Sequence record: MT366760.1
Length of the DNA: 64,000 nt
Direction: 5' to 3' (one strand)
Part shown: in pieces, positions 5,961 through 36,904 of the stretch
Position numbering within the stretch: position 1 is the first letter of the stretch
How the letters are laid out: each line of letters opens with the position of its first letter
The notes under the pieces: model-generated
Told to the model about the DNA's origin: nothing
The model's database searches: none
The model's input: the letters and a program-made list of their open reading frames with translations, nothing else
Program-made: the position numbers and the translations under genes

Positions 5961-5995
5961 ATAATCAAGGACACTCATCGAATGCCCTTTGTTAT
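5961..5995 (-). other. conserved intergenic RNA hairpin H1 (RNase III-site-like)
   Basis: Minus strand ATAACA-AAGGGCATTC-GAT-GAGTGTCCTT-GATTAT. Confidence 0.7.
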
Positions 5996-6054
5996 ATTAG
6001 TCGTTGCGTTTGAACTCACTGTAGATACATAGTCCACAGCATATCAGTGGGGAT

Positions 6055-6690
6055 TTATTGGTCTTGCAGGATTAATGTAGTCTCCTCTACTAGTGTACCA
6101 GATGTGTGTGATGAATTGCGCATTGTCCAGAGGGCTAGTCGGTCGTCGTGTGACTTGTAACGGTTAAGCGCGACATCAACTGTTCTCCAACCACCACCCA
6201 TTGGGATAAGCTCAATCTGAAAGTGTAGGCGCATACCACCATGAGTCAAAGGTGCATCTAAGAACTTTTCTAAATCCCCAATAGTACCCGCTCTATCCGT
6301 GGAAGAATTACTACGTGCTAAATGCGGTAGTAGTTTCTCAGTATCAAAGCACACGTCAATGACTTTAAAAGATTCTTTGTTAACCATGGTGATGTCTAGA
6401 CCCTTAAGTTCCTTCAACATACTATCAACCAATTGGTCTAGGCGCGATGGGAATACGTGGAAACCCTCGTCAAGAATCTCGTTCATTGCGCATGTGAACG
6501 CTTTGTAATCGGAATAAGAAACCTGAGACTGGATAGAAATAACTGCTTCACGAACCTGATGCATAGCATCGTTACGTAACTGGCTACCCTTTTTGTGTGC
6601 GTGCGCACCGTAGCGAATGAAAGTAGAAAGAATCCATTGAGCGTTAGTCAAATCGTTGTGGACGTTGTCCTGATTGATTGTGATTTTCAT
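6055..6690 (-). CDS. hypothetical protein
   Basis: ORF; start moved to the ATG at 6690 after an AAGGAG SD. Confidence 0.7.
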   Translation of the reverse strand: MKITINQDNVHNDLTNAQWILSTFIRYGAHAHKKGSQLRNDAMHQVREAVISIQSQVSYSDYKAFTCAMNEILDEGFHVFPSRLDQLVDSMLKELKGLDITMVNKESFKVIDVCFDTEKLLPHLARSNSSTDRAGTIGDLEKFLDAPLTHGGMRLHFQIELIPMGGGWRTVDVALNRYKSHDDRLALWTMRNSSHTSGTLVEETTLILQDQ

Positions 6691-6710
6691 AAGTGTTCTC
6701 CTTTGCAAAC

Positions 6711-6746
6711 ATAATCGGAAGCACTTTGGTAAATGCTTCCTGTTAT
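6711..6746 (-). other. conserved intergenic RNA hairpin H2
   Basis: ATAACA-GGAAGCATTT-ACCA-AAGTGCTTCC-GATTAT, 1 nt after the stop at 6748. Confidence 0.7.
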
Positions 6747-6747
6747 A

Positions 6748-7128
6748 TTAACTAATTTGGAAAACCTGAGTGTTTGGACAATCGAAGTGTTCGACTTCTG
6801 CTTTAACTAACTCAGCGATTGTTGCACAGTCACCACGGATAACCTTAACGTATTGAGTACCATCAACGTCGTGAGTCTTTTCAATCCAAACCTGACCATC
6901 AGCAGTAGTAGCAACCTGATAGTGGATGTTACTTTTGTTAAGGTACAAATGAGTGCGGTATTTACCAGTACCATAAGTTGGACAACCTTTCTTGTGTACT
7001 AGATTCAAGCAATCCTCTTCAGTGTAGCTTGACTCAAGTTCCTTATCGAATATAACAGCCATATCCATCTTGTTAGCAGCTAGTTGTTCTTCGATTGCTT
7101 TTACTTCTTCACGTTTGATAGTTTTCAT
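6748..7128 (-). CDS. hypothetical early protein
   Basis: 126-aa ORF directly after the sigma70 promoter at 7170-7198. Confidence 0.7.
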   Translation of the reverse strand: MKTIKREEVKAIEEQLAANKMDMAVIFDKELESSYTEEDCLNLVHKKGCPTYGTGKYRTHLYLNKSNIHYQVATTADGQVWIEKTHDVDGTQYVKVIRGDCATIAELVKAEVEHFDCPNTQVFQIS

Positions 7129-7169
7129 AATCGTATTCCTCTAAGTTACTATCATTTATCCACACTTCC

Positions 7170-7198
7170 ATTATACCAGAATATGAGTTCCATTGCAA
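7170..7198 (-). promoter_or_regulatory. host sigma70 promoter (extended -10)
   Basis: Minus strand TTGCAA-17 bp-TATAAT, with TGG immediately before the -10. Confidence 0.8.
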
Positions 7199-7223
7199 AT
7201 TTATTTACCATACGACAAAGATG

Positions 7224-7252
7224 AAAAAGCCCCAACCGAAGTCAGGGCTTTT
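7224..7252 (-). terminator. intrinsic terminator
   Basis: GCCCTGAC-TTCG-GTTGGGGC-TTTTT after the stop at 7255. Confidence 0.85.
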
Positions 7253-7254
7253 AC

Positions 7255-8169
7255 TTACACATGGAATAATATATCAGTTGGTACCTTCGTATGTAACTTT
7301 GAATCTGAAGTTACATCAAGGTCTACGAGATTAATACCATATTCATAGCGATTTAGACTACGTTCAGGTACGTTGAAGCACATAGTGTTATCCTGAGTGA
7401 ATCCCGCTTCTGCGGCACATTCTAAAACTTCATAATAAGACCAAATTCTCTGCGTCCATGGTTGTTCAACATTTATCCTAGATATTTGAGCTGACTTAGT
7501 CTCATCAGTATAGAATCTGAATTTAAGCCACGTCTTCATTGTGTTCGTCCATAAATCGTATTCTGAAGACTCCGTTGACTCCATGTATAAACTAGATGTA
7601 CCACCCTGTTCTAAATAATCACGTATAGGATGGTGAGATTCAATGTACCGTTTAGACACCTTTGTTTCTACGTGGTTAAGTACACCACTGCCGCCATCCG
7701 GATCTCCGACATGTAGGAAGAAGATACCACCCGATTTATCTAGGGCTTCTTTAACTCTCTTGAACATACTCACTACTAGTTCTCTAGCGGTATAGTCTTT
7801 ATTAGGTAGGATACATGGTAGCGAATGATAGTGCGCCACAATAATATCGCAGTCTTCGGGGTACTCATCAAGACATGCGTCACCCTGCCATACATCGGGT
7901 GACGACTTAATGATATCCATGGTTTGGTATTCCCTGACTGGGTAGGGGCACACACGTATGAAGTCCTCACGATGTTCCGAGATACCCGCGAAGGTTTCAA
8001 ACACTTTTAAACTCGGAGTACCGATAGAAGAATCTTTTAGTTGCTTGTACGTATCAAGTGCTTGAAGGAGCTTCCAATTATCATACGACTTATAGAACTG
8101 GGGTCTGCCATACATTAATCCGTACAAGGGGTACACATCATAAATGTGTGGAATACATTTCTTATTCAT
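7255..8169 (-). CDS. class I SAM-dependent methyltransferase (small-molecule type), paralog B
   Basis: ETFAG (motif I), WQGDA, DIIVAHYHSL, ALDKSGGIFF and QRIW...AEAGF; clearly homologous to 8894..9841. Confidence 0.65.
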   Translation of the reverse strand: MNKKCIPHIYDVYPLYGLMYGRPQFYKSYDNWKLLQALDTYKQLKDSSIGTPSLKVFETFAGISEHREDFIRVCPYPVREYQTMDIIKSSPDVWQGDACLDEYPEDCDIIVAHYHSLPCILPNKDYTARELVVSMFKRVKEALDKSGGIFFLHVGDPDGGSGVLNHVETKVSKRYIESHHPIRDYLEQGGTSSLYMESTESSEYDLWTNTMKTWLKFRFYTDETKSAQISRINVEQPWTQRIWSYYEVLECAAEAGFTQDNTMCFNVPERSLNRYEYGINLVDLDVTSDSKLHTKVPTDILFHV

Positions 8170-8205
8170 TGTAGTAACCTATAAATTACGTAAGCATTTG
8201 TATAT

Positions 8206-8212
8206 ATTTACA
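8206..8212 (-). promoter_or_regulatory. TGTAAAT box
   Basis: Abuts the terminator; 37 nt upstream of the methyltransferase B start. Confidence 0.5.
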
Positions 8213-8217
8213 AGATT

Positions 8218-8247
8218 AAAAAGCCCCAACCGGAGTCGAGGCTTTTT
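8218..8247 (-). terminator. intrinsic terminator
   Basis: GCCTCGAC-TCCG-GTTGGGGC-TTTTT. Confidence 0.8.
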
Positions 8248-8262
8248 GCTAGTGTGTCTTAC

Positions 8263-8757
8263 CTACTTACGAATAGCAGTCGTAATCGTACTCTGGATTA
8301 CACGAAAGGCTGTTTCGAATAATGTCGATACACGTGAGGACTCATGGTACATCGCGCTAATGTTGACATCTTGGACAACTGCTGATGAATAGCTCTTAGG
8401 TAGACTAGGTAGTGTGACACTTTCTAATTCAAAACCTTCTTCCCTAAGATTTCCCAATACCTCAAAACCAAGGTTGCGCCATTTGTTAGCGGAATCACTA
8501 GAATTAATAACTAGACTCGGCAATATGTCTGCCTCGTTTACGAACGTAATTGAAGCGTATACGTAATGCTTAAAGTTATCCTGCTCACGTAACAAGTCCT
8601 GAGTACGTTCGAAGTAGACGTTTAATACAGGTTGACCTTTATTAACTACGATCTCCGTAGATACTTTTTCAGCAGCTACTGTGCTTAATGAAGCACCTGA
8701 ATGGATATTAGTCTGGACGTTAAGCAATGTAGTCATCTGGAATTGTGCGATAGTCAT
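8263..8757 (-). CDS. hypothetical early protein
   Basis: Start reassigned to MTIAQ at 8757 because the longer track ORF runs through the promoter. Confidence 0.65.
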   Translation of the reverse strand: MTIAQFQMTTLLNVQTNIHSGASLSTVAAEKVSTEIVVNKGQPVLNVYFERTQDLLREQDNFKHYVYASITFVNEADILPSLVINSSDSANKWRNLGFEVLGNLREEGFELESVTLPSLPKSYSSAVVQDVNISAMYHESSRVSTLFETAFRVIQSTITTAIRK

Positions 8758-8806
8758 AACAAGTCTCTCTTTAATATTTAATCTTAAGTGGTTATTCCAC
8801 ACTTCC

Positions 8807-8835
8807 ATTATACCAGAATGTGGACTCCATTGCAA
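8807..8835 (-). promoter_or_regulatory. host sigma70 promoter (extended -10)
   Basis: TTGCAA-17 bp-TATAAT; the region is near-identical to 7160-7233. Confidence 0.8.
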
Positions 8836-8860
8836 ATTTATTTACCATACAGTAAAGACG

Positions 8861-8884
8861 AAAAAGCCCCGCACATGGCGAGGC
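8861..8884 (-). terminator. intrinsic terminator
   Basis: GCCTCGC-CAT-GTGCGGGGC-TTTTT after the stop at 8894. Confidence 0.7.
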
Positions 8885-8893
8885 AATTTATGG

Positions 8894-9841
8894 TTAAGCT
8901 CCACGCTCCACACTGAACAGGATGTCAGTAGGGACGTTAAGTTTAGTCTGTTTGTTTTTACTGACAATTTTATCACAAAGATAAATTGCTTCATCATAAC
9001 GATTAAGCTTTAGGTCAGGGACGTGGAATGGGTGAATGCCCTCAGCGACGAATCCTGCTTCAACAGCACAATCCATAATCTCCCAGTAAGCCCACATACG
9101 TTGTTCCCACTTATCCTTAATCGTAATGTTAAGAGTAACGTCGTCACCAATCAGGTCAGCACGGATAGTAGATATCTGTGTGCAACGTACTAAGTCGTAG
9201 TAGGAGTCTTCGTAGAATTCGAGCAACAAGTTCTCTTGCAATCCGAATTGATGTTCCTTGAACGCTGAACGTAACGGACTAAACTGAGGGATGTAATGCT
9301 GCAACATATTGTTCGCAGCGAAGTCATTGATACCCTCGGATGCATCAGGGTCACCAACATGCAGGAAGAATATACCACCTGACTTAGTCAATGCTTCATG
9401 CACTCGTTTGAACATCTCAACGATTAGTTGACGTGACGTATACCCGTCCTTCGGAAGGATACATGGTAGCGAGTGATAGTGTGCCACAATGATATCTGCG
9501 TTATCGGGGTACGTATCCAGACACGCATCACCCTTCCAAACATCACGACCATCACCGTGTATATCCATAGTACGGTAGGAGTTAATTGGGAAGGGGCACT
9601 CACGGAGGAAGTCATCCTTGTGTTCAGATTGACCCGCGAATGTTTCAAGTATATTAAGACCTTTTAGGTTAGCACCAAAGTCTTTCCCTGAGACACCACT
9701 ATAGGTATCCATTGCTTGTAGGAGTTTCCAGTTATCATACGACTTATAAAACTGAGGACGTCCGTATACTGCTTTATATAGAGGGTAAATATCATATATC
9801 GACTGTAGTTCGATATTGATAGTCTTATGATTATCTGTCAT
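8894..9841 (-). CDS. class I SAM-dependent methyltransferase (small-molecule type), paralog A
   Basis: ETFAG, WKGDA, DIIVAHYHSL, ALTKSGGIFF and QRMW...VEAGF; shares YGRPQFYKSYDNWKLLQA with 7255..8169. Confidence 0.65.
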   Translation of the reverse strand: MTDNHKTINIELQSIYDIYPLYKAVYGRPQFYKSYDNWKLLQAMDTYSGVSGKDFGANLKGLNILETFAGQSEHKDDFLRECPFPINSYRTMDIHGDGRDVWKGDACLDTYPDNADIIVAHYHSLPCILPKDGYTSRQLIVEMFKRVHEALTKSGGIFFLHVGDPDASEGINDFAANNMLQHYIPQFSPLRSAFKEHQFGLQENLLLEFYEDSYYDLVRCTQISTIRADLIGDDVTLNITIKDKWEQRMWAYWEIMDCAVEAGFVAEGIHPFHVPDLKLNRYDEAIYLCDKIVSKNKQTKLNVPTDILFSVERGA

Positions 9842-9872
9842 TGTTTTTACCTTGTTGTATTAACTAAGTTTA

Positions 9873-9879
9873 ATTTACA
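9873..9879 (-). promoter_or_regulatory. TGTAAAT box
   Basis: 32 nt upstream of the methyltransferase A start. Confidence 0.5.
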
Positions 9880-9906
9880 TTATTGATGAATAGACAACCT
9901 AGTTAG

Positions 9907-10281
9907 CTACATATCCAGAAAACCTATTACGCGGGTCTTTGCCGCTAGTACACTTGCAGCCGTCTTCAACTTAAAGAACTTTTTAGGTCCTTTACCCTTT
10001 TCTTTACCACGAGGCCACAACCATTTATGCGACCAGTATTTTGGACTGGTCTTATCCTTTATGTCTTCCTCGCCATGACGGGCGTAGTATCTGTCGTTTG
10101 CATCAGTGCTATAATTATCGTCTAGGTTTTCATCGCCAAAGCGTACAACTTTGTAGGAGTCTCCATTCCTAACTAGAACCTTTCCTTGTTTATTACCACG
10201 GTCTGCTATAGGCATATCAATGCCAGGGAACTTATGACCCTTCCATACTACATTACCCCACTTATCTTTTTCCAATTCCAT
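9907..10281 (-). CDS. conserved viral hypothetical protein (DUF5754-like)
   Basis: KV.RFG...Y..RH...SPKYWS..WLW pattern recalled from DUF5754-type viral proteins. Confidence 0.4.
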   Translation of the reverse strand: MELEKDKWGNVVWKGHKFPGIDMPIADRGNKQGKVLVRNGDSYKVVRFGDENLDDNYSTDANDRYYARHGEEDIKDKTSPKYWSHKWLWPRGKEKGKGPKKFFKLKTAASVLAAKTRVIGFLDM

Positions 10282-10331
10282 TTTATTCCTCCTAGATATT
10301 GACGCCCCGACAATCAGGGCGCCAGTGTATA

Positions 10332-11966
10332 TTACTCCTTGGTTATACGGAATGCGTTCAGATAGGCATAGCTTACACCCGATTTAGGTTGGAAGGTTAT
10401 GCCATTGTCCAATAGCTGCTGACCCGTCACACCTGACCATACATCAGTGCCCCAAGGGTCTAGTCCACCATTTATTTCCTTAGTAACACCGCCCACTGTG
10501 TATTCACCCGTTCTGTCATCCGTAGTTACACGGCACGCCAGTAGTTCGACACGGTAGGAATCAGTTGGATTCACACCACTATCCAGATTAACCGTAATCG
10601 CACCACCTATTGTCCATACGCTGTCTCGTGTACAACCTTTATCGAATAAGTCACCCGAATCATTTTCTTCCACTGCCCTACCTGCGGTATTAATACCACC
10701 GATTTCTCCAGATATAGATAATGTCGCATTTTCGACTAGTGAACCATCACCGACATTATTGTAAACCCCATTAAGGGCTACAGTCGTTTTGTCGCTATTA
10801 ACAATAATCTTGTTCTTGTCACCGTCCATATGGTTACGACCATTAGAGGCTTCCGGTAAGCTAATGTTGATTACAGCATCTGTGATATACGTACCAGGAA
10901 CTGTTGGTGGCGTAACTGGTTGTGAGGGTTCGACTACAGTATCTTTAGGGACAACTGTAGAAATCTGTTGAGCAATGTACGTAGCTATACCCGTAGTACC
11001 CGCTGTTGAAGGGTGGACACCATCAGCACTGTACCATTCTGGGTTGTCACCCATAGCATTGTACAGATCGATGACTGGATTACCCGCTGAGTCAACCCAC
11101 TCTGGTAATAGTTCTTTAATTAATGGGATATAGATATTTTCGTTGTAGGGTGCTGACCTCTTGGTAGAAGGGTCAATTCGCTTGGTCAATGGACTCATTG
11201 CACAACCCATACCACGACCCTTGATATTACCGATAATGGCGCGTACGTTACTCTCAATCGTATCAGCGTTATGGGGATAAGGGTTAACCGTTGATAAATC
11301 ATTACCACCGATGTGTAGGAACACCAACGTTTCCTCAGCTCTATCCATCAGATCATCAAGTAACGTATCAATGTTGTCAAGAACCCATGTAGTTGATTTA
11401 CCAGAACTAGCTCTGTCCACCACTTCCATAGTGATACCATTATCCGCGTAGGTATCGACTGCTACCTTACGTCGTGCTTCCGTGTTGTGAGAACCAGCCA
11501 TAATCGAGGCACCAATAATAACTACTCGTGTGTATTTAGGAACGAGTATCTTCGGTGACAACATTTTAGTCAGAGTATCGTTTCGCTGAACTAAGAAGGG
11601 GTCGTCTTCTATAATCAGATCAATAGAACCAAGTCTACTCATGTCGAATAGTTTGTCCCATTCCTTCTTTGACAAATCCTTTGGTTGGAACCATACATTA
11701 GAACCAGTGAGCTTGTGTTCTCTAAAAGTGTATTCACCTGATTTAGCACGGCGGATACCAATACGTTTCAGGTCGTATGTATCCTCAACAACTTTAGATT
11801 CAACCTTGATACCTAGTCTACTTTCAAGTTCTAACAGACTATGTATCGACCCAGATAATTCACTTGGTTTGAACCAATATGTTTTATCCTTGTTTAGATA
11901 TACACCATTAACAACAACATCTTGGCGGGTAAATTGCCCTTGCAGTGTTAATCCTATTAGCTTCAT
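10332..11966 (-). CDS. SGNH/GDSL hydrolase (esterase/deacetylase) with duplicated N-terminal module and beta-rich C-terminal domain, possibly virion-associated
   Basis: IIGASI (block I Ser), SGKST (block II), IGGNDL (block III) and DGVHP (block V); start MKLIGL at 11966 with a GGAGAG SD. Confidence 0.75.
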   Translation of the reverse strand: MKLIGLTLQGQFTRQDVVVNGVYLNKDKTYWFKPSELSGSIHSLLELESRLGIKVESKVVEDTYDLKRIGIRRAKSGEYTFREHKLTGSNVWFQPKDLSKKEWDKLFDMSRLGSIDLIIEDDPFLVQRNDTLTKMLSPKILVPKYTRVVIIGASIMAGSHNTEARRKVAVDTYADNGITMEVVDRASSGKSTTWVLDNIDTLLDDLMDRAEETLVFLHIGGNDLSTVNPYPHNADTIESNVRAIIGNIKGRGMGCAMSPLTKRIDPSTKRSAPYNENIYIPLIKELLPEWVDSAGNPVIDLYNAMGDNPEWYSADGVHPSTAGTTGIATYIAQQISTVVPKDTVVEPSQPVTPPTVPGTYITDAVINISLPEASNGRNHMDGDKNKIIVNSDKTTVALNGVYNNVGDGSLVENATLSISGEIGGINTAGRAVEENDSGDLFDKGCTRDSVWTIGGAITVNLDSGVNPTDSYRVELLACRVTTDDRTGEYTVGGVTKEINGGLDPWGTDVWSGVTGQQLLDNGITFQPKSGVSYAYLNAFRITKE

Positions 11967-12063
11967 CTTATCTCTCCGCTTTGTTTGGTTACCAATATAA
12001 TTAGCTACAAACACGAAAAAGTCCCCAGAGCGCGTCATAGGGACTTTTATTTCATACTTTAGT

Positions 12064-15347: not shown

Positions 15348-15373
15348 ATCTCCTGTATATAAAGTGGTTGAAC

Positions 15374-15408
15374 ATAATCGAGTGCCCTCAGGGAAGACAC
15401 TCTGTTAT
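15374..15408 (-). other. conserved intergenic RNA hairpin H3
   Basis: ATAACA-GAGTGTCTTC-CCT-GAGGGCACTC-GATTAT, 1 nt after the stop at 15410. Confidence 0.7.
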
Positions 15409-15409
15409 G

Positions 15410-15730
15410 TTATTCATCGTCCAGATAGTTGATGTGTTTGGGATTCTTCAAGTGTTGCCACCACCCATAGACGTGTAGGAACCACAACTCCGCTATCATA
15501 ATGGAACCTATAGCAAACTCAACCATATCTTTAAACGTGTGAGTCTCATAGAGCACATCATGGAAAGCGGAACGATAGTCAGGATTATCACGTAGTCGCC
15601 ACGCAATGAACCCTGTTATGATAACACCTAGTATGAAGTTAAATGCTAGAACCCATAGAACTATCACCAACACTGATAGGATAGTCTGTAACGGAACGTT
15701 GAAAGTGAATTCAGGAATTGTAATATCCAT
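15410..15730 (-). CDS. hypothetical membrane protein
   Basis: Long hydrophobic stretch ILSVLVIVLWVLAFNFILGVIITGFIAW. Confidence 0.65.
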   Translation of the reverse strand: MDITIPEFTFNVPLQTILSVLVIVLWVLAFNFILGVIITGFIAWRLRDNPDYRSAFHDVLYETHTFKDMVEFAIGSIMIAELWFLHVYGWWQHLKNPKHINYLDDE

Positions 15731-18837: not shown

Positions 18838-18855
18838 ATTGTGCTCCTCATAAAC

Positions 18856-18891
18856 ATAATCGAGGACACTCCTAAGAATGCCCTCTGTTAT
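18856..18891 (-). other. conserved intergenic RNA hairpin H4
   Basis: ATAACA-GAGGGCATTC-TTAG-GAGTGTCCTC-GATTAT, 1 nt after the stop at 18893. Confidence 0.7.
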
Positions 18892-18892
18892 G

Positions 18893-19246
18893 TTAATCAT
18901 CGGCTAGTATACTAACCCAACCCCTTGACTCGTAGTGCAACTCAGCCTGAGTCAACTCGTCGAGCTTCATGCTCAGTACGATAGCATCACTGATCTGCGG
19001 GTACTCCTTGAGTAACCATTGAGCAGTAGCGCCTGCGTTACACAGTGAGCGAAACTGTGAAAAGCTAGCGTCCTGATTGCGGACAGCATCACCCATGCTA
19101 ACCATGCCGCTGCCTGTGGACGTTAAGCACTTCCCATCTTCAAGTGCTCGTAGTGCCATAGCACGCATTAGTCTTTCACAATGCGCTAGGTCAGCTTGGC
19201 GGAACGCGTTTACATCTGCAGGGATACTGTTATCTTTACTCATCAT
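18893..19246 (-). CDS. hypothetical protein
   Basis: 117-aa ORF. Confidence 0.65.
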   Translation of the reverse strand: MMSKDNSIPADVNAFRQADLAHCERLMRAMALRALEDGKCLTSTGSGMVSMGDAVRNQDASFSQFRSLCNAGATAQWLLKEYPQISDAIVLSMKLDELTQAELHYESRGWVSILADD

Positions 19247-19534: not shown

Positions 19535-19563
19535 ATTATACCAGAATACGGGTTCCATTGCAA
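19535..19563 (-). promoter_or_regulatory. host sigma70 promoter (extended -10)
   Basis: TTGCAA-17 bp-TATAAT, same family as 7170 and 8807. Confidence 0.8.
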
Positions 19564-20213: not shown

Positions 20214-20249
20214 AAAAAGCCCCAACCTCGTTAGAAGTCAGGGCTATTT
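20214..20249 (-). terminator. intrinsic terminator
   Basis: GCCCTGAC...GTTGGGGC-TTTTT. Confidence 0.75.
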
Positions 20250-27225: not shown

Positions 27226-28200
27226 TTAAATTTGGTAGAACGCGCCCTTATCTAAACCCTCAGAGATATAGACGGATGATACACCTAGCTCACGGAACTG
27301 AGCTTTATATTTGTCTGCGACGTAAGCGACAATACACTCGATTGTTGTCTCTTCAGGTAGAATCAAGTAGTCCTGCTCGATGTGCAACTTGAATACACCA
27401 CGAGACTTAGATGTGTATTGAACTAGGGTACGTGAACCCTCTTTCTTACCTTCAGTAATGTTACAACGGGCAACTAGATATTTACCATCCAAGAACTCGG
27501 ATACTTTACGAGTCAGGCGGTCTAGCTGAGCTTTGTATTCACTGGACGCGAAGTTCTCATGAATACCTACCAGTTGGATAAAGGACTTATGCCCGTGCAT
27601 GATGTTCTGACAACCATAGGAAGTGCTGTCCTTTAAACCGTGCGTATACGTCACTGGATATGCCTGAGTCAACACCCATCCACGAACGTCTTGTGGTGTA
27701 ACGTGGTTGAAAGCCCAGATAAGTGATACTTTGATTTCAAAGTCAGGGAATTGCTCGTTTAACGCACCCTGCAACCAACGCTGAATCATCGTCATCGGAT
27801 CTTCGCGGTAGTCACGGTCAAATTCCAACACGTGTACAGCGTGCGCGTCTGCTTCGATGTACGTATCATTCAGAGTGGTTAACTGGACTGCTTTAACCGC
27901 CTTTGAACCCTTCTGCTTTTTATTGAAGTAGCTAGGTTCCTCTTTACAACCGACTACTTTGTCTACAACCTTAAACGCAAGCAGTTTGTGGTCGATACCA
28001 GTTTCTGGGTCATCAATGAACTTTTTGATGTCTTTCTTAATTGTAGAGAAGTCAACTACAACGGATTCTTCTTCATCAATCTTGCCCGTGATGTGGATAC
28101 GAGGTGACACTGAAAACCCAGTACAAATACCTTCACTGTTAATATATGCCCCATCAATAACAGTTACGTTATGAAGGAACATTGATGCTGTCTTACTCAT
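27226..28200 (-). CDS. queD: two-domain (long-form) 6-carboxytetrahydropterin synthase QueD-like
   Basis: VVDFS.IKK.IK..ID...DHKLL in domain 1, YTHGLK...CQNIMHGH.S metal motif in domain 2 and PEETTIE; long form as recalled for Vibrio/Shewanella. Confidence 0.8.
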   Translation of the reverse strand: MSKTASMFLHNVTVIDGAYINSEGICTGFSVSPRIHITGKIDEEESVVVDFSTIKKDIKKFIDDPETGIDHKLLAFKVVDKVVGCKEEPSYFNKKQKGSKAVKAVQLTTLNDTYIEADAHAVHVLEFDRDYREDPMTMIQRWLQGALNEQFPDFEIKVSLIWAFNHVTPQDVRGWVLTQAYPVTYTHGLKDSTSYGCQNIMHGHKSFIQLVGIHENFASSEYKAQLDRLTRKVSEFLDGKYLVARCNITEGKKEGSRTLVQYTSKSRGVFKLHIEQDYLILPEETTIECIVAYVADKYKAQFRELGVSSVYISEGLDKGAFYQI

Positions 28201-29960: not shown

Positions 29961-30542
29961 CTAGATACCTAGTTGGCGTTTCCAGAAATGGTAGGGTGTC
30001 TTCTTGTACTGCAACCAAACACCGTGCTTCATGAAGTAATCTACTGTCCAACGGAACCGCAGAGGCATTCGCATTGTATCAGTACCCAATCCAAGGTCAC
30101 CCGCCATACTCTTCTCAACCTCCAACACAATCGGGTAACTACGTGTCATCTCATCAGCTATTGCTACTTGCGAACCCTGTTCAGGATTAATTACTGTGAG
30201 CGGAATCTTTTGAGCTAATGAGAAGTAGATATTGTGGGGTATAAGGACAGCAGTCACACGGTGAGCGTAATACTGGTCTGGTGTGATACCATCTCCACCA
30301 TAACTACCACTGTATAATAAGCCTGTGCTACGGTTGTGCACTAGAGCATTGAACGCAATAAAGTTCTCACACGCGATGTCGTAACCTTCTTCGTACTCAC
30401 CGTTTAACTTACGGTGAACAACCTCACTCGGGGATAGGGGTATAAAAGAGATACTGTCACCTTCGTTCATCATACCCACTGACTTTTCGTTAAGGATGAA
30501 AAGCTTGTTTACTTTGATTTCTGGTTTGTCTTGAGTCATCAT
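29961..30542 (-). CDS. hypothetical protein
   Basis: Start reassigned to MMTQDK at 30542, downstream of hairpin H5. Confidence 0.65.
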   Translation of the reverse strand: MMTQDKPEIKVNKLFILNEKSVGMMNEGDSISFIPLSPSEVVHRKLNGEYEEGYDIACENFIAFNALVHNRSTGLLYSGSYGGDGITPDQYYAHRVTAVLIPHNIYFSLAQKIPLTVINPEQGSQVAIADEMTRSYPIVLEVEKSMAGDLGLGTDTMRMPLRFRWTVDYFMKHGVWLQYKKTPYHFWKRQLGI

Positions 30543-30566
30543 AATCGTTACTCTTGGTTGGTTGAT

Positions 30567-30601
30567 ATAATCGGATGCCCTCTTAGAAGACATCCTGTTA
30601 T
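30567..30601 (-). other. conserved intergenic RNA hairpin H5
   Basis: ATAACA-GGATGTCTTC-TAA-GAGGGCATCC-GATTAT, 2 nt after the stop at 30604. Confidence 0.7.
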
Positions 30602-30603
30602 AT

Positions 30604-31065
30604 CTAGATACGGGGTAGATCTAACTCATCTAGTATAGGATTAGTAATGTTCAGGTAAACTATCCAGTTGACGATTATCACAAGCATCAGGGGTAATACT
30701 AACTTCGGCTCGTGCACAAAACCCATAAGGATAACAATCACGTCCTTACATATAGACATCTTGGTTAAGTGATACGCTTCGTATAAACAGTATTCTTGGT
30801 TATCTTCTCTTGATTGTGCAAACCAACGAACAACACCTACTGTCTCTAATACTAAAACCACTAACAACGTGGATACCCATATATCAGCGTTGAATTCGAA
30901 TATCCAATCTGAAATTCTACATAGTAGCGCGTAGACAATTAGGGTAGCGAAAGCTAGTTGAAAGCTTCTGAACCATCCGTATTGGTCTTTGACTTTATGC
31001 TTAATAATAATCATCTTATTTACCTCGGTAGGGATTCTGTTTAGTGAAGTATCGACACTTATCAT
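30604..31065 (-). CDS. hypothetical multi-pass membrane protein
   Basis: About four hydrophobic segments; start probably MIIIK. Confidence 0.65.
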   Translation of the reverse strand: MISVDTSLNRIPTEVNKMIIIKHKVKDQYGWFRSFQLAFATLIVYALLCRISDWIFEFNADIWVSTLLVVLVLETVGVVRWFAQSREDNQEYCLYEAYHLTKMSICKDVIVILMGFVHEPKLVLPLMLVIIVNWIVYLNITNPILDELDLPRI

Positions 31066-31753
31066 TTACACATTCCCTGTCAGTGTAGTGTAAGTGTTTT
31101 CCTATCTTGCCAAGTGGTTTTAGGTAGGGTTCCCAATCTGGTGCTTTTCTACCAAGACCATACTGTGCTGACGGTGACCAGAAGTGATTAGACTTAGTAG
31201 ACCTTTTGATGTAACCATCATAGAGACCACTAGCGAAATACTTTATCTCCAACCATGCAGCAGCATCAATTGGATTATCAAAGATTGGCGTCGCCCAAAA
31301 TTCGTCATTGTCTCGGATTAACTTGGTTAACTGTCTAAGGTCGTCCTTAATTGATTCGTATTGCGCACGGGATAATAACACCGAACACGTGTCGTCCTTG
31401 TATACCCGCGAGTCACGTAAGTCATCAGTTCGATTAAGAATAGAACTGCCAATAGCAATTATCCCCTGAGCAGTGTCATCCCTTGATTCACCATACATCC
31501 CCAAGGATAAACAAGCTATTTCTTTCTCGCGTTTTAACTCGGAGGGGGTTAACACGGTTGGGGTGGATGCAGCCACTTGAGGAGCGGCAACCATAGGCTC
31601 CTGTGGCAACGTTTCGTATTCAGTCGGTTGGTTAACTGTGAATTCAGTAAAATCACGTACAGTGACATCTGATGCGTCTACCGCAATGTCAACTACCAGA
31701 CCTATTTCCATAATAATTAAAGCAGCTAGTGCTACCTTTCTCTTATTCATCAT
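31016..31753 (-). CDS. SleB/Hydrolase_2-family cell-wall hydrolase with N-terminal anchor
   Basis: CLSLGMYGESR...AIGSSILNR...CSVL...QYES...HFW...PDW...IGKHLHY. Confidence 0.8.
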   Translation of the reverse strand: MMNKRKVALAALIIMEIGLVVDIAVDASDVTVRDFTEFTVNQPTEYETLPQEPMVAAPQVAASTPTVLTPSELKREKEIACLSLGMYGESRDDTAQGIIAIGSSILNRTDDLRDSRVYKDDTCSVLLSRAQYESIKDDLRQLTKLIRDNDEFWATPIFDNPIDAAAWLEIKYFASGLYDGYIKRSTKSNHFWSPSAQYGLGRKAPDWEPYLKPLGKIGKHLHYTDRECVNDKCRYFTKQNPYRGK

Positions 31754-31781
31754 ATTAATCTAACCCTTGTGTGGTTTGTCC

Positions 31782-31817
31782 ATAATCGGGGGCACTCCTA
31801 TGAATACCCTCTGTTAT
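31782..31817 (-). other. conserved intergenic RNA hairpin H6
   Basis: ATAACA-GAGGGTATTC-ATAG-GAGTGCCCCC-GATTAT (one mismatch), 2 nt after the stop at 31820. Confidence 0.65.
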
Positions 31818-31819
31818 GC

Positions 31820-32599
31820 CTAAACCTCGTACAGTATGAACGGGATGTTCTTACCGGAGCGGAAACATTTACCAGACATTTGTTGGATTTGACTGTAATA
31901 TATGTCTGATGTTCCATGTGGTATCAGACATATAACTTCCGAAAATGTATCTCGGATGTCGTAGCCTATTGACCACTGACGTAGGTTACCGATTACACAC
32001 TCCAGTCCCTGAACGATTGGTTCCTTTTCTACTAGTACACTGTGGGGTGATGCCGTGTACGGGTAGAACCCCCTAGTCTCAGCAACAACCTTAACTGCTT
32101 CACCCATGTCTGGGAGTGGTGTAACGATTAGGGCTTTAGCTAGATGGTGATTAACCAATTTATCCTTAACTAGAAGTCTATCCCAAGTACCCGTAATAGG
32201 TGAACACTTTGAGGTGCGTTCCTTCGATTCGTGTCCACGCTCACCCGTTAAGATATAGTTACAGTTGATGGTGTAGGGTTTACCGTATTCCACTGTGGTA
32301 CTAGCAACAACCTTATCTTGGTTCTTGTTGATGTTGTGTAGCTTGTTGAACATATGTTCAAGAGCCTGACCCAATGAAGAACCCTCGCCATACGCAACAA
32401 CAGGGTTATCAGTCTCACTACAGATGTAAACACACTCACCCATCTTACCGCGCTTGTCTAAACCAAACATCTTAATAGCTACGTGTTGGTTAGCAGTCGG
32501 ATCTTCTAGTTGATACTTACGCGTAACCTCGATAACAAGACCCTGACGTTGTGTCTCTTCGATGACACGTTCCATAATACCTTTAATTGGAGTAAACAT
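31820..32599 (-). CDS. hypothetical protein
   Basis: 259-aa ORF. Confidence 0.7.
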   Translation of the reverse strand: MFTPIKGIMERVIEETQRQGLVIEVTRKYQLEDPTANQHVAIKMFGLDKRGKMGECVYICSETDNPVVAYGEGSSLGQALEHMFNKLHNINKNQDKVVASTTVEYGKPYTINCNYILTGERGHESKERTSKCSPITGTWDRLLVKDKLVNHHLAKALIVTPLPDMGEAVKVVAETRGFYPYTASPHSVLVEKEPIVQGLECVIGNLRQWSIGYDIRDTFSEVICLIPHGTSDIYYSQIQQMSGKCFRSGKNIPFILYEV

Positions 32600-33165
32600 T
32601 ATTTGTTCTCCTTAGTTACCAAGATTTGTTCAAGTTGTGGGCGGATAGATTCAACATCAATGTCGTCGGCAACTGGTATCGTACCTTCTAATACACCAGT
32701 GACCACACGACGCATACTAGCTAGGGTAGCTTGCTGAGTAGTGATAAGTTCCTTATCAGCTTTGCGCTTATTATTCAAGTTGTCTACCGTCTCGCGAAGT
32801 GAACACATTGCCTTATTGTTCCTATCGTGAGCCAGTAGTTGGATTGCTCTAGAAGCTTCATCCGACACTAGGAATTCAATGTTAGATAACATTGCGTCTT
32901 TAGTTACACCGTCAATAGTGTCGTTCTCGTCTAGTCCTTCGTAGGCAGCATTGATAACGTCACGCATTGCTCCTGCGCGGTATTCACCTAGCTTGCGCAT
33001 AACACATAACATGTGCATCTGAGCGTTGTGGCTCAAGGTGATAATTTTAAGGAATGGGATCTTAGTTGTAACAACTGGTTTATCTAGGTCACCAACCAAA
33101 CAGCTTTTCTTGCGTGATAGTTGGAATGGGTTGATAGATAGTTCAACGAGTCGTAGCTTAGCCAT
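32599..33165 (-). CDS. hypothetical protein
   Basis: Start MAKLRL after GGAGAATACGATT. Confidence 0.65.
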   Translation of the reverse strand: MAKLRLVELSINPFQLSRKKSCLVGDLDKPVVTTKIPFLKIITLSHNAQMHMLCVMRKLGEYRAGAMRDVINAAYEGLDENDTIDGVTKDAMLSNIEFLVSDEASRAIQLLAHDRNNKAMCSLRETVDNLNNKRKADKELITTQQATLASMRRVVTGVLEGTIPVADDIDVESIRPQLEQILVTKENK

Positions 33166-33190
33166 AATCGTATTCTCCAAGTAATTAAGC

Positions 33191-33838
33191 TTATTTTGTT
33201 TCAGTACTTTCGTAACGTTTCTTAAGTTGTAGATAAAGTTCGTGTTCTTCTTTCTGTGCACGGTTCAGCTCGTAGAAGTATTTAGCAGCTAAACGCAGTG
33301 CAGCTTTAGTCTTGTGGGAACTGACAGCAACCGGTACCTCAATAGCGAATTCATCGTCCTCGCTAATGATGATGTTATTTTCAGTGATGGTGGAAAGGTC
33401 TACCACATCTGATTTAGCTGTCTTTCTGACGTGTTCTGCTAACGCGTTAACTAGGGCAGTAAATTGTGCTAGGTTATATTCACACGGCAACTTATCAAAA
33501 GCGTCTAGGACAAAGCGGGGAATTTCTTCAGTACAACTACCGCTATTGGAAGCGACCAAACGTGAACCTTGTAGGATGAAACGTTGGACAGTTGTATTAG
33601 GTATCATCATCCAAAACTCAGTACCTTCGGAGACTTCTACACTCACACAATCCCACACAGCGCGAGCATTAATACTGGATGTATCCTTAAGCGTGAATAG
33701 TGGTTCAAATATGGAAACCTTGTCTCGTGAGATAAACCATTCAATCATATCACACGACAATTTGTTATCTGGAAGTTTAACCTTATCACTAGGTAGTTCA
33801 AATGTAACACCGGAATTCTTATTCATATTACTCATCAT
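33191..33838 (-). CDS. hypothetical protein
   Basis: 215-aa ORF. Confidence 0.7.
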   Translation of the reverse strand: MMSNMNKNSGVTFELPSDKVKLPDNKLSCDMIEWFISRDKVSIFEPLFTLKDTSSINARAVWDCVSVEVSEGTEFWMMIPNTTVQRFILQGSRLVASNSGSCTEEIPRFVLDAFDKLPCEYNLAQFTALVNALAEHVRKTAKSDVVDLSTITENNIIISEDDEFAIEVPVAVSSHKTKAALRLAAKYFYELNRAQKEEHELYLQLKKRYESTETK

Positions 33839-33839
33839 G

Positions 33840-34079
33840 TTATTTACCTTTTAGTTTCCAACGTGCATCCCAAGGAGCACCAATACCAGTTACTGATTTG
33901 TCCGCATTAAGAATGACGGGACGGTTAGCCCATCGACCTCGGTAAGACACCCCGTCCTCAGCGATACATAAGTAAGTTCTACACTCAAATTCTTCGTGTT
34001 TAGCAGGTCCTGCACCAAAGTAGATGACTACTCGGGGGCAAAAGATAAACGTCAATAGACGTATTAAGTAGTTACGCAT
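33840..34079 (-). CDS. hypothetical protein
   Basis: 79-aa ORF, GGAGAG SD. Confidence 0.6.
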   Translation of the reverse strand: MRNYLIRLLTFIFCPRVVIYFGAGPAKHEEFECRTYLCIAEDGVSYRGRWANRPVILNADKSVTGIGAPWDARWKLKGK

Positions 34080-34098
34080 TTCGACTCTCCATGTAATG

Positions 34099-34134
34099 AT
34101 AATCGGGTGCCCTTATTAAAAGACACCCTGTTAT
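34099..34134 (-). other. conserved intergenic RNA hairpin H7
   Basis: ATAACA-GGGTGTCTTT-TAAT-AAGGGCACCC-GATTAT, 2 nt after the stop at 34137. Confidence 0.7.
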
Positions 34135-34136
34135 TA

Positions 34137-34493
34137 TTACTCCGGAAGTAGTAAGTGCTCAGTTAACATCTGACATAAGTCTTCTTCTATAATTAACAAG
34201 TCTTCTTCAGTTTCTGGGTTCCACGACTTATGCGTATGTACCGCGCAATTCGTATGACCTATGACACTTACCGAACATGATACACCATCACGACCCGATG
34301 AGTAAAGGATTTCAGTAGTGATACCCGCATGGACATCCTGAATACTTAAGCGTTCTGTTACGCTTGTCAGATGTACACGCGACATGTGGTAGCGGTGGTG
34401 AAGGCTGTGTGGAATAGCTAAACGAATGACTTCTGCTGAACGGTCAGTGTCGATGTTAACGATAGCGCCTGAAAGAAAATCTAGAGTTTTCAT
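34137..34493 (-). CDS. hypothetical protein
   Basis: Start MKTLD at 34493, downstream of hairpin H8. Confidence 0.65.
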   Translation of the reverse strand: MKTLDFLSGAIVNIDTDRSAEVIRLAIPHSLHHRYHMSRVHLTSVTERLSIQDVHAGITTEILYSSGRDGVSCSVSVIGHTNCAVHTHKSWNPETEEDLLIIEEDLCQMLTEHLLLPE

Positions 34494-34522
34494 AATCGTG
34501 TTCCTTTTTGTCTTCTGAGTAA

Positions 34523-34558
34523 TTAATCGGATGCCCTTATTAAAAGACATCCTGTTAA
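34523..34558 (-). other. conserved intergenic RNA hairpin H8
   Basis: TTAACA-GGATGTCTTT-TAAT-AAGGGCATCC-GATTAA, abutting the stop at 34559. Confidence 0.7.
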
Positions 34559-34828
34559 TTAGTCGTTATCCATATCCATCTGGTTAGCAAAGCGAATTGC
34601 GAAAGGAATGCTAAACATACTAGCAAACGCAAGTTTGAACAGAGTCTCTAAATCGTAAGAACCAACTGTGAAAACGAAGTCGCTATCTAGCCAGTTAAAG
34701 TCAACTGCGAAACCTGCTTTCATAGCCAATGCTGCGGTAGCAAACAAAGTAGTAATAGTAAGAACTGCTATAATTGCTAATGCAACAACGAATATCTTTA
34801 GAGCGGTAACTAATTGAGTGTTCATCAT
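34559..34828 (-). CDS. small membrane protein (early)
   Basis: Start MMNTQ after AAGGA; two hydrophobic segments. Confidence 0.6.
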   Translation of the reverse strand: MMNTQLVTALKIFVVALAIIAVLTITTLFATAALAMKAGFAVDFNWLDSDFVFTVGSYDLETLFKLAFASMFSIPFAIRFANQMDMDND

Positions 34829-34868
34829 GATCTTGTCCTTGGTGGAAAGTATTTGTTTTCGTATGTCC

Positions 34869-34897
34869 ATTATACCATAATCTCCGATGGGAATCAA
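34869..34897 (-). promoter_or_regulatory. host sigma70 promoter (extended -10)
   Basis: TTGATT-17 bp-TATAAT, with TGG before the -10. Confidence 0.7.
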
Positions 34898-34902
34898 ATT
34901 TA

Positions 34903-34909
34903 ATTTACA
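34903..34909 (-). promoter_or_regulatory. TGTAAAT box
   Basis: Between the terminator and the sigma70 promoter. Confidence 0.35.
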
Positions 34910-34923
34910 AGAGCCTAAAGTAG

Positions 34924-34949
34924 AAAAAGCCCCAATTAAGGAGCTTTTT
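34924..34949 (-). terminator. intrinsic terminator
   Basis: GCTCC-TTAATT-GGGGC-TTTTT. Confidence 0.75.
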
Positions 34950-34954
34950 CGGAG

Positions 34955-35578
34955 TTAGTCATCAGTGGATTTAACACCAAACACAATGCTGTCAAATAGC
35001 TCTTTCTGTTGGCGTTCGTGTAGCCCATGGATTGTTTTGCCTAGTTCATCTGGGATATGTAGTCCAGGGTCAACTAAGTGTAGACTTTGATGAGCGTGAA
35101 GGGACAGTGTCCTTGTTACACCAAACGTAGCTAGTTCACCACACGCGAAACCTTTTGGAATTGATGATAAATCAAAGGGGATGTCATACGGAGGTAAATC
35201 ATTCTTGGGTTTCAACATGTCAGCCATAACACGATTCTCTATTTCTCTAAAGTCCATATCAAGAGCATATGCTGACATTCCACTGCGAGCCCTAGCTCCC
35301 CAAGTGTAACCCTGCTTAGACTTAGAGACACCGTGAACGTCTTTACCACATGCTAGTAGGAAACGAGAACCCCCACTAAGCAAGAACCACTTTGTACGTA
35401 ACCCAATATCAAGGGGTGTCCCTAACGTATCTTGTTTAGGCGCGTTGTTACTTGGTTTGAGCCAAGAGGGTATCGGGTTGTCATTACGGCTCAAACGACC
35501 TGTAAGTGTACCCCGTGATACAAAGCATTCATCAATTATTCTAGAGTCTATATCCATGTTCTTGTTTAGTATAGCCAT
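34955..35578 (-). CDS. hypothetical protein carrying family A DNA polymerase-like motif remnants
   Basis: GTLTGRLS (cf. TxTGRLSS) and MDFREIENRVMA (cf. motif A DYSQIELRxLA); no motif B or C. Confidence 0.45.
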   Translation of the reverse strand: MAILNKNMDIDSRIIDECFVSRGTLTGRLSRNDNPIPSWLKPSNNAPKQDTLGTPLDIGLRTKWFLLSGGSRFLLACGKDVHGVSKSKQGYTWGARARSGMSAYALDMDFREIENRVMADMLKPKNDLPPYDIPFDLSSIPKGFACGELATFGVTRTLSLHAHQSLHLVDPGLHIPDELGKTIHGLHERQQKELFDSIVFGVKSTDD

Positions 35579-35600
35579 AATCGTCTTCTCTTTTAGTTAC

Positions 35601-35636
35601 TTAATCGAGGGCACTCACACAAATACCCTCTGTTAA
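35601..35636 (-). other. conserved intergenic RNA hairpin H9
   Basis: TTAACA-GAGGGTATTT-GTGT-GAGTGCCCTC-GATTAA, abutting the stop at 35637. Confidence 0.7.
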
Positions 35637-36836
35637 TTAACTATCAATAGTCATTTGCCAAGCGCGTTGACTGATTTCTTCTTTAGTCGGTTGACGGACT
35701 AGTTTACTCTTAAGTTGTTGAATAGTTTGATTCAGTAACATTGAGTTATTTATGATACCAGTCTGACCATTCATGTCAATCAAACCAAATAGGTCTTTGT
35801 CGCCTTTCTTGAACACAAAGATATCTGATTCGTTGTAGTCATTGGTAACTGTCAGAGTTACTTCATTACCCAAGAATGACTTATCAATATCAACTTGCAA
35901 ACCTGCTGCGTCCAACATACCTACGAACTTAGCCATATTGATACTACGTGCCTGATGCACCGTGTTCAAATAGCCGATGTTCTTATCCATCACTGATTCA
36001 TAGATATATGGTTTCAGTACTTCTTCTAAGTATTCAGCTTTCAGATCTTGTTCAGCTTGGTACTTGAAGTTCTGGTATGATGTTAAGTCAGCTACCATTT
36101 CGGATAGGCGTTCACCGATGTCTGCGCGTTGTGTTTCATCCGTCAACTGACGCATTTTATTGAACACCTGAGCATACAAGTCTTCTGGGTAGAACTCATC
36201 CGGATGGGATTGTGCGTATTCAATCTTCTCGATTAGTTCTACGTAAAGAACTTTAATGTCATAAGCTTCTTTAGCCAGTAGCACTTCCTGCGCAGCTTTG
36301 CGGAAGTTCATGCGTTCGTCACCTGGCTTTAGATAATCAGCTTTATCAAGGATTTGATATTCTAGCTCATCACGAGTCATGATACCGAAGTCTGATTTAA
36401 CATCGTCAAGCAACTTGTATGCATCTGCGTAACGGTCAACTGGTTCGTCAGATGCTACTTCAGTAGATACTCCGTAACTAACAGCGTTCTCTTTATGTTG
36501 TCCCGCTGCATTTGCCAATCGTTCAGCTTCTGATGGGAATACCCACTGCCAATAGTCTGCTGTGTTACGCGAAGTGTTCCACTTAGTTGGCTTATCAAGA
36601 CCGTAACAGTCCGCGATATTTGCCGCCAATTGTTTTGCTGAGCCTGCTTCATTATACAATGCTAAGTAAGCTTCTGCATAGCTAACGCTCTCTACATTTG
36701 GTGCTTGAGAGAAGTTAAGCTCCATACCGTTTGTACTTACGAATGCCTTTTCACACCAGTCTGCGTTGGATGCATGTGATTGAAGTGGTAGTGTTGTTGC
36801 TAGGGCTAAGCCCACGATTGCTAATATCTTTTTCAT
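35637..36836 (-). CDS. hypothetical exported protein
   Basis: Signal peptide MKKILAIVGLALATTLPLQSHA-S; 399 aa, mostly helical. Confidence 0.7.
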   Translation of the reverse strand: MKKILAIVGLALATTLPLQSHASNADWCEKAFVSTNGMELNFSQAPNVESVSYAEAYLALYNEAGSAKQLAANIADCYGLDKPTKWNTSRNTADYWQWVFPSEAERLANAAGQHKENAVSYGVSTEVASDEPVDRYADAYKLLDDVKSDFGIMTRDELEYQILDKADYLKPGDERMNFRKAAQEVLLAKEAYDIKVLYVELIEKIEYAQSHPDEFYPEDLYAQVFNKMRQLTDETQRADIGERLSEMVADLTSYQNFKYQAEQDLKAEYLEEVLKPYIYESVMDKNIGYLNTVHQARSINMAKFVGMLDAAGLQVDIDKSFLGNEVTLTVTNDYNESDIFVFKKGDKDLFGLIDMNGQTGIINNSMLLNQTIQQLKSKLVRQPTKEEISQRAWQMTIDS

Positions 36837-36868
36837 GATACGTTCCTTTGTTTTCGGATTAATAGTAG

Positions 36869-36904
36869 TTAATCAAGCGCCCTCAATAGAAGACGCTTTG
36901 TTTA
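36869..36904 (-). other. conserved intergenic RNA hairpin H10
   Basis: TAAACA-AAGCGTCTTC-TATT-GAGGGCGCTT-GATTAA; lower stem extended by TAGTAG/CTACTA. Confidence 0.65.

Follow-up and report, generated by a model that had tools for sequence, protein, structure and literature searches.

A covarying family of hairpins at gene ends in the early operons of Vibrio phage vB_VcorM_GR7B, predicted to be RNase III processing signals

Processing of phage early mRNA by RNase III has been textbook knowledge since T7, and in the Bacillus phages SP82 and SPO1 conserved hairpins between the early genes are cut by host RNase III. Here we describe a family of intergenic hairpins in Vibrio phage vB_VcorM_GR7B (hereafter GR7B; record MT366760.1, 207,758 bp; host, Vibrio coralliilyticus RE98). 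The window analyzed is a stretch of 64,000 nt that is identical in sequence to the first 64,000 bases of the record (genome positions 1-64000), and ten copies of the hairpin lie in it on the minus strand, the strand that carries all GR7B genes from 0.6 to 82 kb, nearly all of them annotated as hypothetical. The hairpins belong to a real covarying family that acts at the RNA level, with 14 strong copies and one variant copy on the sense strand of the early gene blocks. Judging from sequence, they are likely to be processing signals between cistrons, recognized in the mRNA by host RNase III.

The features by which Escherichia coli RNase III selects its substrates were mapped on the minimal substrate uR1.1 (Pertzev & Nicholson 2006; PMC1540722). 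In that study, optimal binding depended on a distal box of 2 bp, with UA at position 1 and UG at position 2, the latter being so stringently required that flipping the U.G pair cost 50-fold. The proximal box comprises 4 bp, namely G-C, then A-U or U-A, then A-U, then A-U or U-A, and a G-C or C-G pair at its position 2 strongly inhibits binding (the reactivity of the G-C variant of uR1.1 was about 0.06; PMC1540722). Internal loops confine cleavage to one phosphodiester and so leave protective hairpins at the 3' ends of the products (PMC1540722).

We compared the GR7B hairpins with the T7/T3 sites R0.3, R0.5, R1, R1.1, R1.3, R3.8, R4.7, R6.5, R13 and R18.5. The T7/T3 sites and the GR7B elements share an intercistronic position on the sense strand and a common layout of lower stem, internal loop, upper stem of about 10 bp and small loop; in both, the 5' strand of the lower stem has UAA at its end, and the 3' strand has GA-UUA. 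In T7 R1.1 the top of the upper stem, CAUUC...GAGUG, is identical to that of the GR7B hairpins, the UA/UG distal box included. The annotated RNase III stem-loops of T3, UGAUAA-ACUC-[AAGGUC...GGCCUU]-UAUGA-UUAUCA, have the same layout, and the upstream stop codon is often within the lower stem, as in GR7B; five of the ten begin at or over it. The two groups differ in the internal loop, which is a symmetric 2x2 CA/GA loop in GR7B and an asymmetric loop of about 4x5 (ACUC/UAUGA) in T7/T3, and in the bottom of the upper stem, which is often G-C-rich in GR7B, whereas T7/T3 have AAGG/CCUU. GR7B itself is a 208-kb myovirus unrelated to T7, appears to use host RNA polymerase together with a phage sigma factor, and has hairpins whose cleavage is a prediction. 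SP82 and SPO1 resemble GR7B in being large phages with hairpins between early genes, but the host enzyme, its specificity and the hairpin sequences differ.

The ten window sites have the minus-strand consensus (A/U)UAA-CA-[10 nt]-[3-4 nt]-[10 nt]-GA-UUA(U/A). A minimal scan of the window, for CA plus a 10-nt arm with at least nine of ten pairs, a loop of 3-5 nt and GA, returned on the minus strand exactly the ten elements named in a preliminary description of this DNA, and on the plus strand four poor matches with 0-2 lower-stem pairs. With a lower stem also required, the window yielded 11 matches, whereas 200 dinucleotide shuffles yielded 0.19 on average and never more than 2. A loose consensus pattern that allowed two mismatches had found ten matches where 9.1 were expected, which is chance level, and structure-aware scans were therefore used instead. 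Scanning the whole genome with a covariance model of the family (model R1, not to be confused with the T7 site of that name), a step proposed in the preliminary description, brought in four further strong copies and the variant copy, H15; all copies outside the window are on the minus strand within blocks of small genes. Covariance-model searches found no hairpin at 37-184 kb and none on the plus strand of GR7B, its late block included, and the statement that the 41-64 kb block is free of copies holds, since none turned up at 37-64 kb.

Every copy forms the predicted structure, with folding energies of -15 to -22.5 kcal/mol and z-scores of -3.7 to -8.2. Two G.U wobbles per stem pair on the sense strand only, and the sense strand folds more stably than the antisense strand in all 15 copies (means, -18.7 versus -12.0 kcal/mol), which bears out the earlier argument from strand-specific wobbles that the element works as RNA. 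In an alignment of the 14 strong GR7B copies, with H15 set apart, 94% of the paired cells can pair, as opposed to 43-49% when the partners are slid by 1-3 columns, and both sides have changed in 12 of the 18 pairs; the compensatory variation that had been noted in the upper stem is thus genuine. Within this variation, all 14 copies keep U.G at pair 8 and U-A at pair 9, a constancy first described for the window that extends to the strong copies outside it. The CA/GA internal loop, which had been called invariant, is constant in the ten window copies, but one copy outside the window has CG/GA. The lower-stem pairs next to the loop, A-U, A-U and U-A, are kept in 14, 14 and 13 of the 14 copies, respectively.

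The flanks of the GR7B copies are not homologous, and the copies are therefore not segmental duplicates. A search against Rfam 15 gave no matches at the gathering score across the whole window, and a permissive Rfam search of the 34-37 kb region gave only a chance match to a snoRNA, away from the hairpins. No close relative of GR7B was found by megablast among 50,697 phage records, and neither tblastn of GR7B_00054 nor a scan of IMG/VR proteins found a relative for orthologous comparison.

The hairpins are tied closely to the ends of genes. In 8 of the 10 window copies, the stop codon of the upstream open reading frame (ORF) has its end at model position 2-4; for all 15 copies genome-wide, 13 have it at position 1-4. 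In those eight window copies, as many as had been linked to stop codons before, the stop codon is thereby the outermost part of the lower stem; H1 and H10 are the exceptions. The next start codon follows 14-28 nt past the end of the hairpin, and its Shine-Dalgarno sequence is left free. A function in stop-codon read-through, or one similar to that of a selenocysteine insertion sequence (SECIS), was rejected because most of the stops are UAA and the copies do not keep a constant reading frame relative to the following gene.

The match between these hairpins and the determinants of RNase III is closest at the distal box. To align the boxes with the hairpins, we used the 6-nt 5' product reported in the uR1.1 study together with its variant names, in which C9:G30 denotes position 2 of the proximal box. 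On this alignment, the distal box falls on pairs 9 and 8, the two invariant pairs, with matching order and orientation, and is U-A/U.G in all 14 strong GR7B copies, as it is in 35/35 members of a wider set that takes in other phages. Position 1 of the proximal box falls on pair 3, where 11/14 GR7B copies and 28/35 of the wider set have G-C, and position 4 falls on the A.G mismatch of the internal loop. The constant lower-stem pairs (A-U, A-U, U-A, then A-U or U-A) are free of G-C, as a proximal box demands; the lower stem, with A-U, U-A and A-U/U-A, would make a good symmetric proximal box, but lacks a distal box of its own. In the minimum free energy (MFE) structure of 15/15 copies, a lower stem of 7-8 bp, the 2x2 loop and the 10-bp upper stem form a quasi-continuous helix of 19-20 stacked positions, or about two turns, and the 2x2 loop, although smaller than the T7 loop, sits at the point to which the distal/proximal-box ruler assigns the scissile bonds. 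The preliminary description had likened the GAU that follows the upper stem to the pGAU start of T7 products. This analogy is one of sequence and is not supported in detail: the ruler taken from the boxes as in uR1.1 predicts GAU^UA, 3 nt further downstream, and not ^GAU.

A link to T7 comes from R1.1. Its upper stem, given in the preliminary description as AAGGUCAUUC-GCAA-GAGUGGCCUU, was found as such at T7 5861-5884. In a search of the whole T7 genome with model R2, a covariance model built from 35 upper stems without any T7 sequence, R1.1 was the sole significant match (16.3 bits, E ~0.008), and model R1 also ranked R1.1 first. On sequence-level tests, then, the RNase III reading proposed earlier draws support from the distal box, the match to R1.1, the occurrence of the module in unrelated carriers and the operon context.

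Several points weigh against this reading. Beyond R1.1, none of the nine remaining T7 sites and no T3 site (for T3, with R2) reached significance with the covariance models, which leaves R1.1, the shared design and the distal box as the basis for linking the family to the T7 group. Pair 2, which corresponds to proximal-box position 2, is A-U in seven of the 14 GR7B copies but G-C in six, with a mismatch in the remaining one, and proximal-box position 3 is G-C in 11/14 copies. It is possible that the copies with G-C at pair 2 are weak sites, that the Vibrio enzyme differs, or that the box in the lower stem compensates. The invariance of the distal box in the IMG/VR copies was imposed in part by the search pattern, a constraint from which the ten window copies are free. 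Moreover, the T7 feature tables consulted list no RNase III sites, and the T7 cleavage coordinates used here, which come from no sequence record, are presumed to be right. We also assume that V. coralliilyticus has an RNase III with a specificity similar to that of the E. coli enzyme.

The module is not confined to GR7B. A pattern scan of IMG/VR followed by model R1 revealed many viral contigs that carry it, often with 2-4 copies per locus, and the consensus across them is UUAACA-N5-CAUUC-loop-GAGUG-N5-GAUUAA. The carriers include E. coli phage phiEcoM-GJ1 and other members of the Chaseviridae, a group of uncultured phages with a T7-like primase-helicase and DNA polymerase (gp4/gp5), a T7-like contig in a Nitrincola assembly whose terminase shares 60% identity with T7 gp19, as well as several unrelated singletons, of which one is from a 158-kb contig and another is distantly related to Alishewanella myoviruses. 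The known hosts of the carriers are Gammaproteobacteria. None of the ORFs of phiEcoM-GJ1, of T7 or of the model-positive loci compared has a BLAST-level homologue in GR7B. The module thus occurs in phages for which these comparisons show no protein in common with GR7B, which favors a host enzyme over a phage-encoded reader. Across carriers the upstream stop ends at model position -2 to +4 in 31/39 copies (~80%), and compensatory changes, such as AGGAGC/GUUCCU versus AGGUAC/GUACCU, distinguish the copies that precede ssb in different Chaseviridae.

In phiEcoM-GJ1 the two copies are at 7003-7045 and 8325-8370. The first adjoins "putative phage promoter 3", annotated at 7044-7063 upstream of ssb, and promoter and hairpin together recall the pairs of promoter and RNase III site in T7. 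The second, GAGGUCAUUC...GAGUGGCCUC, agrees with the upper stem of T7 R1.1 at 18/20 positions. Alishewanella phage Slicko01, the isolate closest to one of the loci (L052), has no copies in its first 50 kb.

Among 185,579 species genomes of bacteria and archaea, the strict pattern occurs in three contigs only: the T7-like Nitrincola contig, a contig with two real copies from a metagenome-assembled genome (MAG) binned as Bacteroidota, and one chance match. Since these are just three, two of them phage-like, the module belongs neither to hosts nor to prophages. The Bacteroidota-labelled contig (JAKQVC010000201.1, 38 kb) has strong copies at 1632-1674 and 2159-2201, and is probably a mis-binned phage contig; if its host assignment were correct, the family would reach beyond the Gammaproteobacteria.

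Other readings of the hairpins have to be weighed against the same observations. One is that they bind a protein other than RNase III, either a phage protein (a translational repressor acting at an operator, an antiterminator or a nuclease of the phage's own) or a host protein, such as RNase E with a cut in the GA/UUA segment beside the hairpin. Sites bound by a specific protein typically have invariant pairs near the loop and an invariant internal loop, the next start codon lies 11-30 nt past the hairpin, and a small unannotated ORF rich in Arg and Lys precedes the variant copy H15. We nevertheless consider this reading unlikely, given that the conserved positions coincide with the mapped determinants of RNase III, that GR7B, phiEcoM-GJ1, T7 and the other loci share no BLAST-level protein, and that the GR7B annotation contains no dsRNA-binding (double-stranded RNA-binding) protein and no RNase III; in addition, the Shine-Dalgarno sequence and start codon are free, and 15 gene-end sites per genome are unlike nut or put sites. 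A further suggestion, which we regard as distinctly unlikely, is that the hairpins are only stability barriers at 3' ends, similar to retroregulators or repetitive extragenic palindromic (REP) elements, that block 3'-5' exonucleases once the message has been cleaved elsewhere or is decaying after read-through, with no involvement of RNase III. They are indeed stable (-15 to -22.5 kcal/mol) and placed exactly at ORF ends, as are intrinsic terminators and REP-like stabilizers, and the RNase III model also ends in a protective 3' hairpin. Stability alone, however, leaves unexplained why unrelated phages keep a U.G and a U-A pair in fixed orientation, a CA/GA loop and a lower stem free of G-C, and the U.G wobble in fact reduces stability. 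The GR7B hairpins are set apart from terminators and REP-like elements alike by the lack of a U-tract and by sequence-specific, invariant wobble and internal-loop positions.

A role of the hairpins in weak intrinsic termination or in attenuation between early genes is very improbable. A scan for terminator-like structures did list five copies, because GAUUAUGUUU is T-rich, but the constant 3' flank is GAUUA, which is itself paired in the lower stem and is not a U-run, and several copies continue with GAUUAACUAC or GAUUAAGUAA. The true terminators of GR7B differ, having a G+C-rich stem directly followed by UUUU and then a promoter. Least probable of all is an element that acts as DNA, whether a phage promoter, an N4-type hairpin promoter, a PeSL-like cassette, a protein operator or a small mobile palindrome. 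UUAACA does resemble a -35 element, and the cassette appears in non-homologous contexts and unrelated phages, as a mobile element would. Yet the wobbles pair only on the sense strand, the arms form no perfect DNA palindrome, and all copies are in the sense orientation; UUAACA and GAUUAU are 23-24 nt apart where sigma70 needs 16-18, and no promoter call on the sense strand coincides with a copy. The carriers also differ in how they are transcribed, GR7B having a sigma factor and no annotated RNA polymerase and the Chaseviridae having a T7-like polymerase and separately annotated promoters. The PeSL cassettes of T4-type phages are comparable to the GR7B element in being repeated intergenic hairpin cassettes of about 50-70 nt, associated with small early genes and possibly exchanged; they differ in that a functional sigma70 promoter lies inside the hairpin, whereas the GR7B element lacks a valid promoter geometry and the promoters are separate. 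A repeat of the PeSL-like kind is present in Slicko01 at 9.5-15.3 kb, where GAGUUGACUUUUCAAGCUAGUAU..AUACUAGCUUCAUAAAGUUUAC recurs between at least 12 small genes and holds a sigma70-like promoter (-35 TTGACT, -10 TATACT) inside a hairpin.

If the GR7B hairpins are RNase III signals, processing might proceed as follows. Host RNA polymerase would transcribe the early operons from a family of strong sigma70 promoters, and the RNA, as its sequence shows, folds into the quasi-continuous helix, with the A/U-rich lower stem starting at the upstream stop codon. By analogy with the published biochemistry, RNase III would dock on the upper stem through the distal box, just below the loop-closing pair, and cut at or beside the internal loop. 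The cuts predicted from the ruler are GAU^UA on the 3' side and, if the 5' strand is cut too, C^A. Should the loop allow a cut only in the 3' strand, as it does in T7, the whole hairpin would stay on the upstream message as a 3' cap against exonucleases, and the downstream message would then begin 15-30 nt before its own ribosome-binding site.

The individual copies, which the preliminary description had indexed by their low-coordinate (3') ends, are all on the minus strand, and their bit scores are those of model R1. H1 (5957..5999; 60.0 bits; MFE -16.5 kcal/mol, z -6.0) has the sequence UAAUAUAA-CA-AAGGGCAUUC-GAU-GAGUGUCCUU-GA-UUAUAUU; GR7B_00010 starts 16 nt downstream of it, and the annotated gene upstream ends 56 nt before it. 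In H2 (6707..6750; 55.0 bits), model positions 1-3 are the UAA stop of GR7B_00012, and GR7B_00011 again starts 16 nt downstream. The lower stem contains the stop of GR7B_00026 in H3 (15370..15412; 61.2 bits), of GR7B_00031 in H4 (18852..18895; 62.2 bits, z -8.2), of GR7B_00052 in H8 (34519..34562; 58.3 bits) and of GR7B_00054 in H9 (35597..35640; 57.1 bits). At the stem base of H5 (30563..30605; 60.3 bits) is the UAG stop of GR7B_00045, the G of which pairs with a compensating C, and the stop of GR7B_00051 is at the stem base of H7 (34095..34138; 60.5 bits). H6 (31778..31821; 55.0 bits) has a lower stem of 5 bp and a single A-C mismatch, at upper-stem pair 2. H10 (36865..36908; 54.1 bits), with the upstream stop 9 nt away, has one A-A mismatch in its lower stem, GUAGUAAA/UUAACUAC. 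The genes after H5, H8 and H9 have a start context in common, ACGAUUAUG (window 30527-30560, 34483-34510 and 35561-35590).

The four strong copies added by the whole-genome scans are at genome positions 190633-190675, 191261-191303, 191592-191634 and 205115-205157, and H15, with its larger, T7-like internal loop (CCC/UAU-type), is at 187027-187071, all on the minus strand. The small ORF upstream of H15 is unannotated, has about 48 codons (genome ~187068-187214, minus strand), starts with MSKHRGRNKRQ, is very rich in Arg and Lys, and terminates within the lower stem of H15. It could encode a small RNA-binding peptide or be a chance ORF.

Six near-identical, strong sigma70 promoters of the extended -10 type, TTGCAA-N15-TGnTATAAT (AAAUUUGCAAUGGA...AUUCUGGUAUAAUGGAAG), are present in GR7B, all on the minus strand, and are probably its early promoters. 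As the preliminary description had it, the hairpins lie downstream of sigma70 promoters, inside the operons that follow this six-member family. The promoter at 7170..7198 (TTGCAA-N15-TGGTATAAT) drives the unit with H2 and H1, in which the order is promoter, gene 12, H2, gene 11, H1, gene 10. The promoter at 19535..19563 is upstream of the unit with H4, and that at 40000..40028 is upstream of the unit with H10 and H9, which probably runs on to H8 and H7. The other members of the family are at 8807..8835 in the window and at genome positions 192225-192253 and 195363-195391. Conventional intrinsic terminators (e.g., AAAAGCCCUGACUUCGGUUGGGGCUUUU) are found on the minus strand at window positions 7225-7252, 8866-8884 and 20218-20245; the first two are each about 30 nt upstream of an early promoter and form terminator-promoter cassettes with it. 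Next to promoters and terminators, the hairpins make up a third class of intergenic element, one found inside operons whose transcripts are themselves predicted.

The annotation of GR7B gives the names of Pfam domains; it has an entry for a phage sigma factor and none for an RNA polymerase, RNase III or dsRNA-binding protein. It also includes a full set of 7-deazaguanine (queuosine-precursor) genes, namely a QueD-like protein, GTP cyclohydrolase I, a radical-SAM protein, two copies of QueC and a TGT/DpdA-like protein, at window positions 27226-28200, 54211-54951 and 56564-57496 and genome positions 100500-102090 and 154971-156587. Given this gene set, the virion DNA of GR7B probably contains modified guanines.

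A tentative reading, which we hold to be rather doubtful as a whole, is that the module of about 44 nt is a portable "cistron separator" with a functional built-in stop and graded proximal boxes. Such a module may have spread by horizontal transfer, or arisen by strict convergence, among unrelated virulent phages of Gammaproteobacteria, and its carriers may span T7-supergroup podoviruses, the Chaseviridae and a jumbo Vibrio myovirus. A ribosome terminating at the stop codon would melt the lower stem, and translation of the upstream gene would thereby gate cutting by RNase III and set the stability of each message individually. The quality of the proximal box (AA, GA or GG at pairs 1-2) would tune the efficiency of cutting gene by gene.

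We found no description of the compact module in the literature under the name of the phage, for phiEcoM-GJ1 with RNase III, or for similar motifs. The hairpins are probably a known kind of element in a new compact form, as judged from the 2x2 CA/GA loop, the embedded stop codon and the unrelated carriers, and nothing established is overturned by them. The family is absent from Rfam and so could be added, and the module offers compact, naturally diverse candidate parts for RNase III "insulators" in synthetic operons. If the reading is true, the R1.1-type distal box is in natural use well beyond T7, and determinants so far defined by in vitro mutagenesis would gain an independent evolutionary confirmation. 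If confirmed, the hairpins would also provide a rule for annotating the early operons of GR7B, which is poorly understood, of the Chaseviridae and of many uncultured phages.

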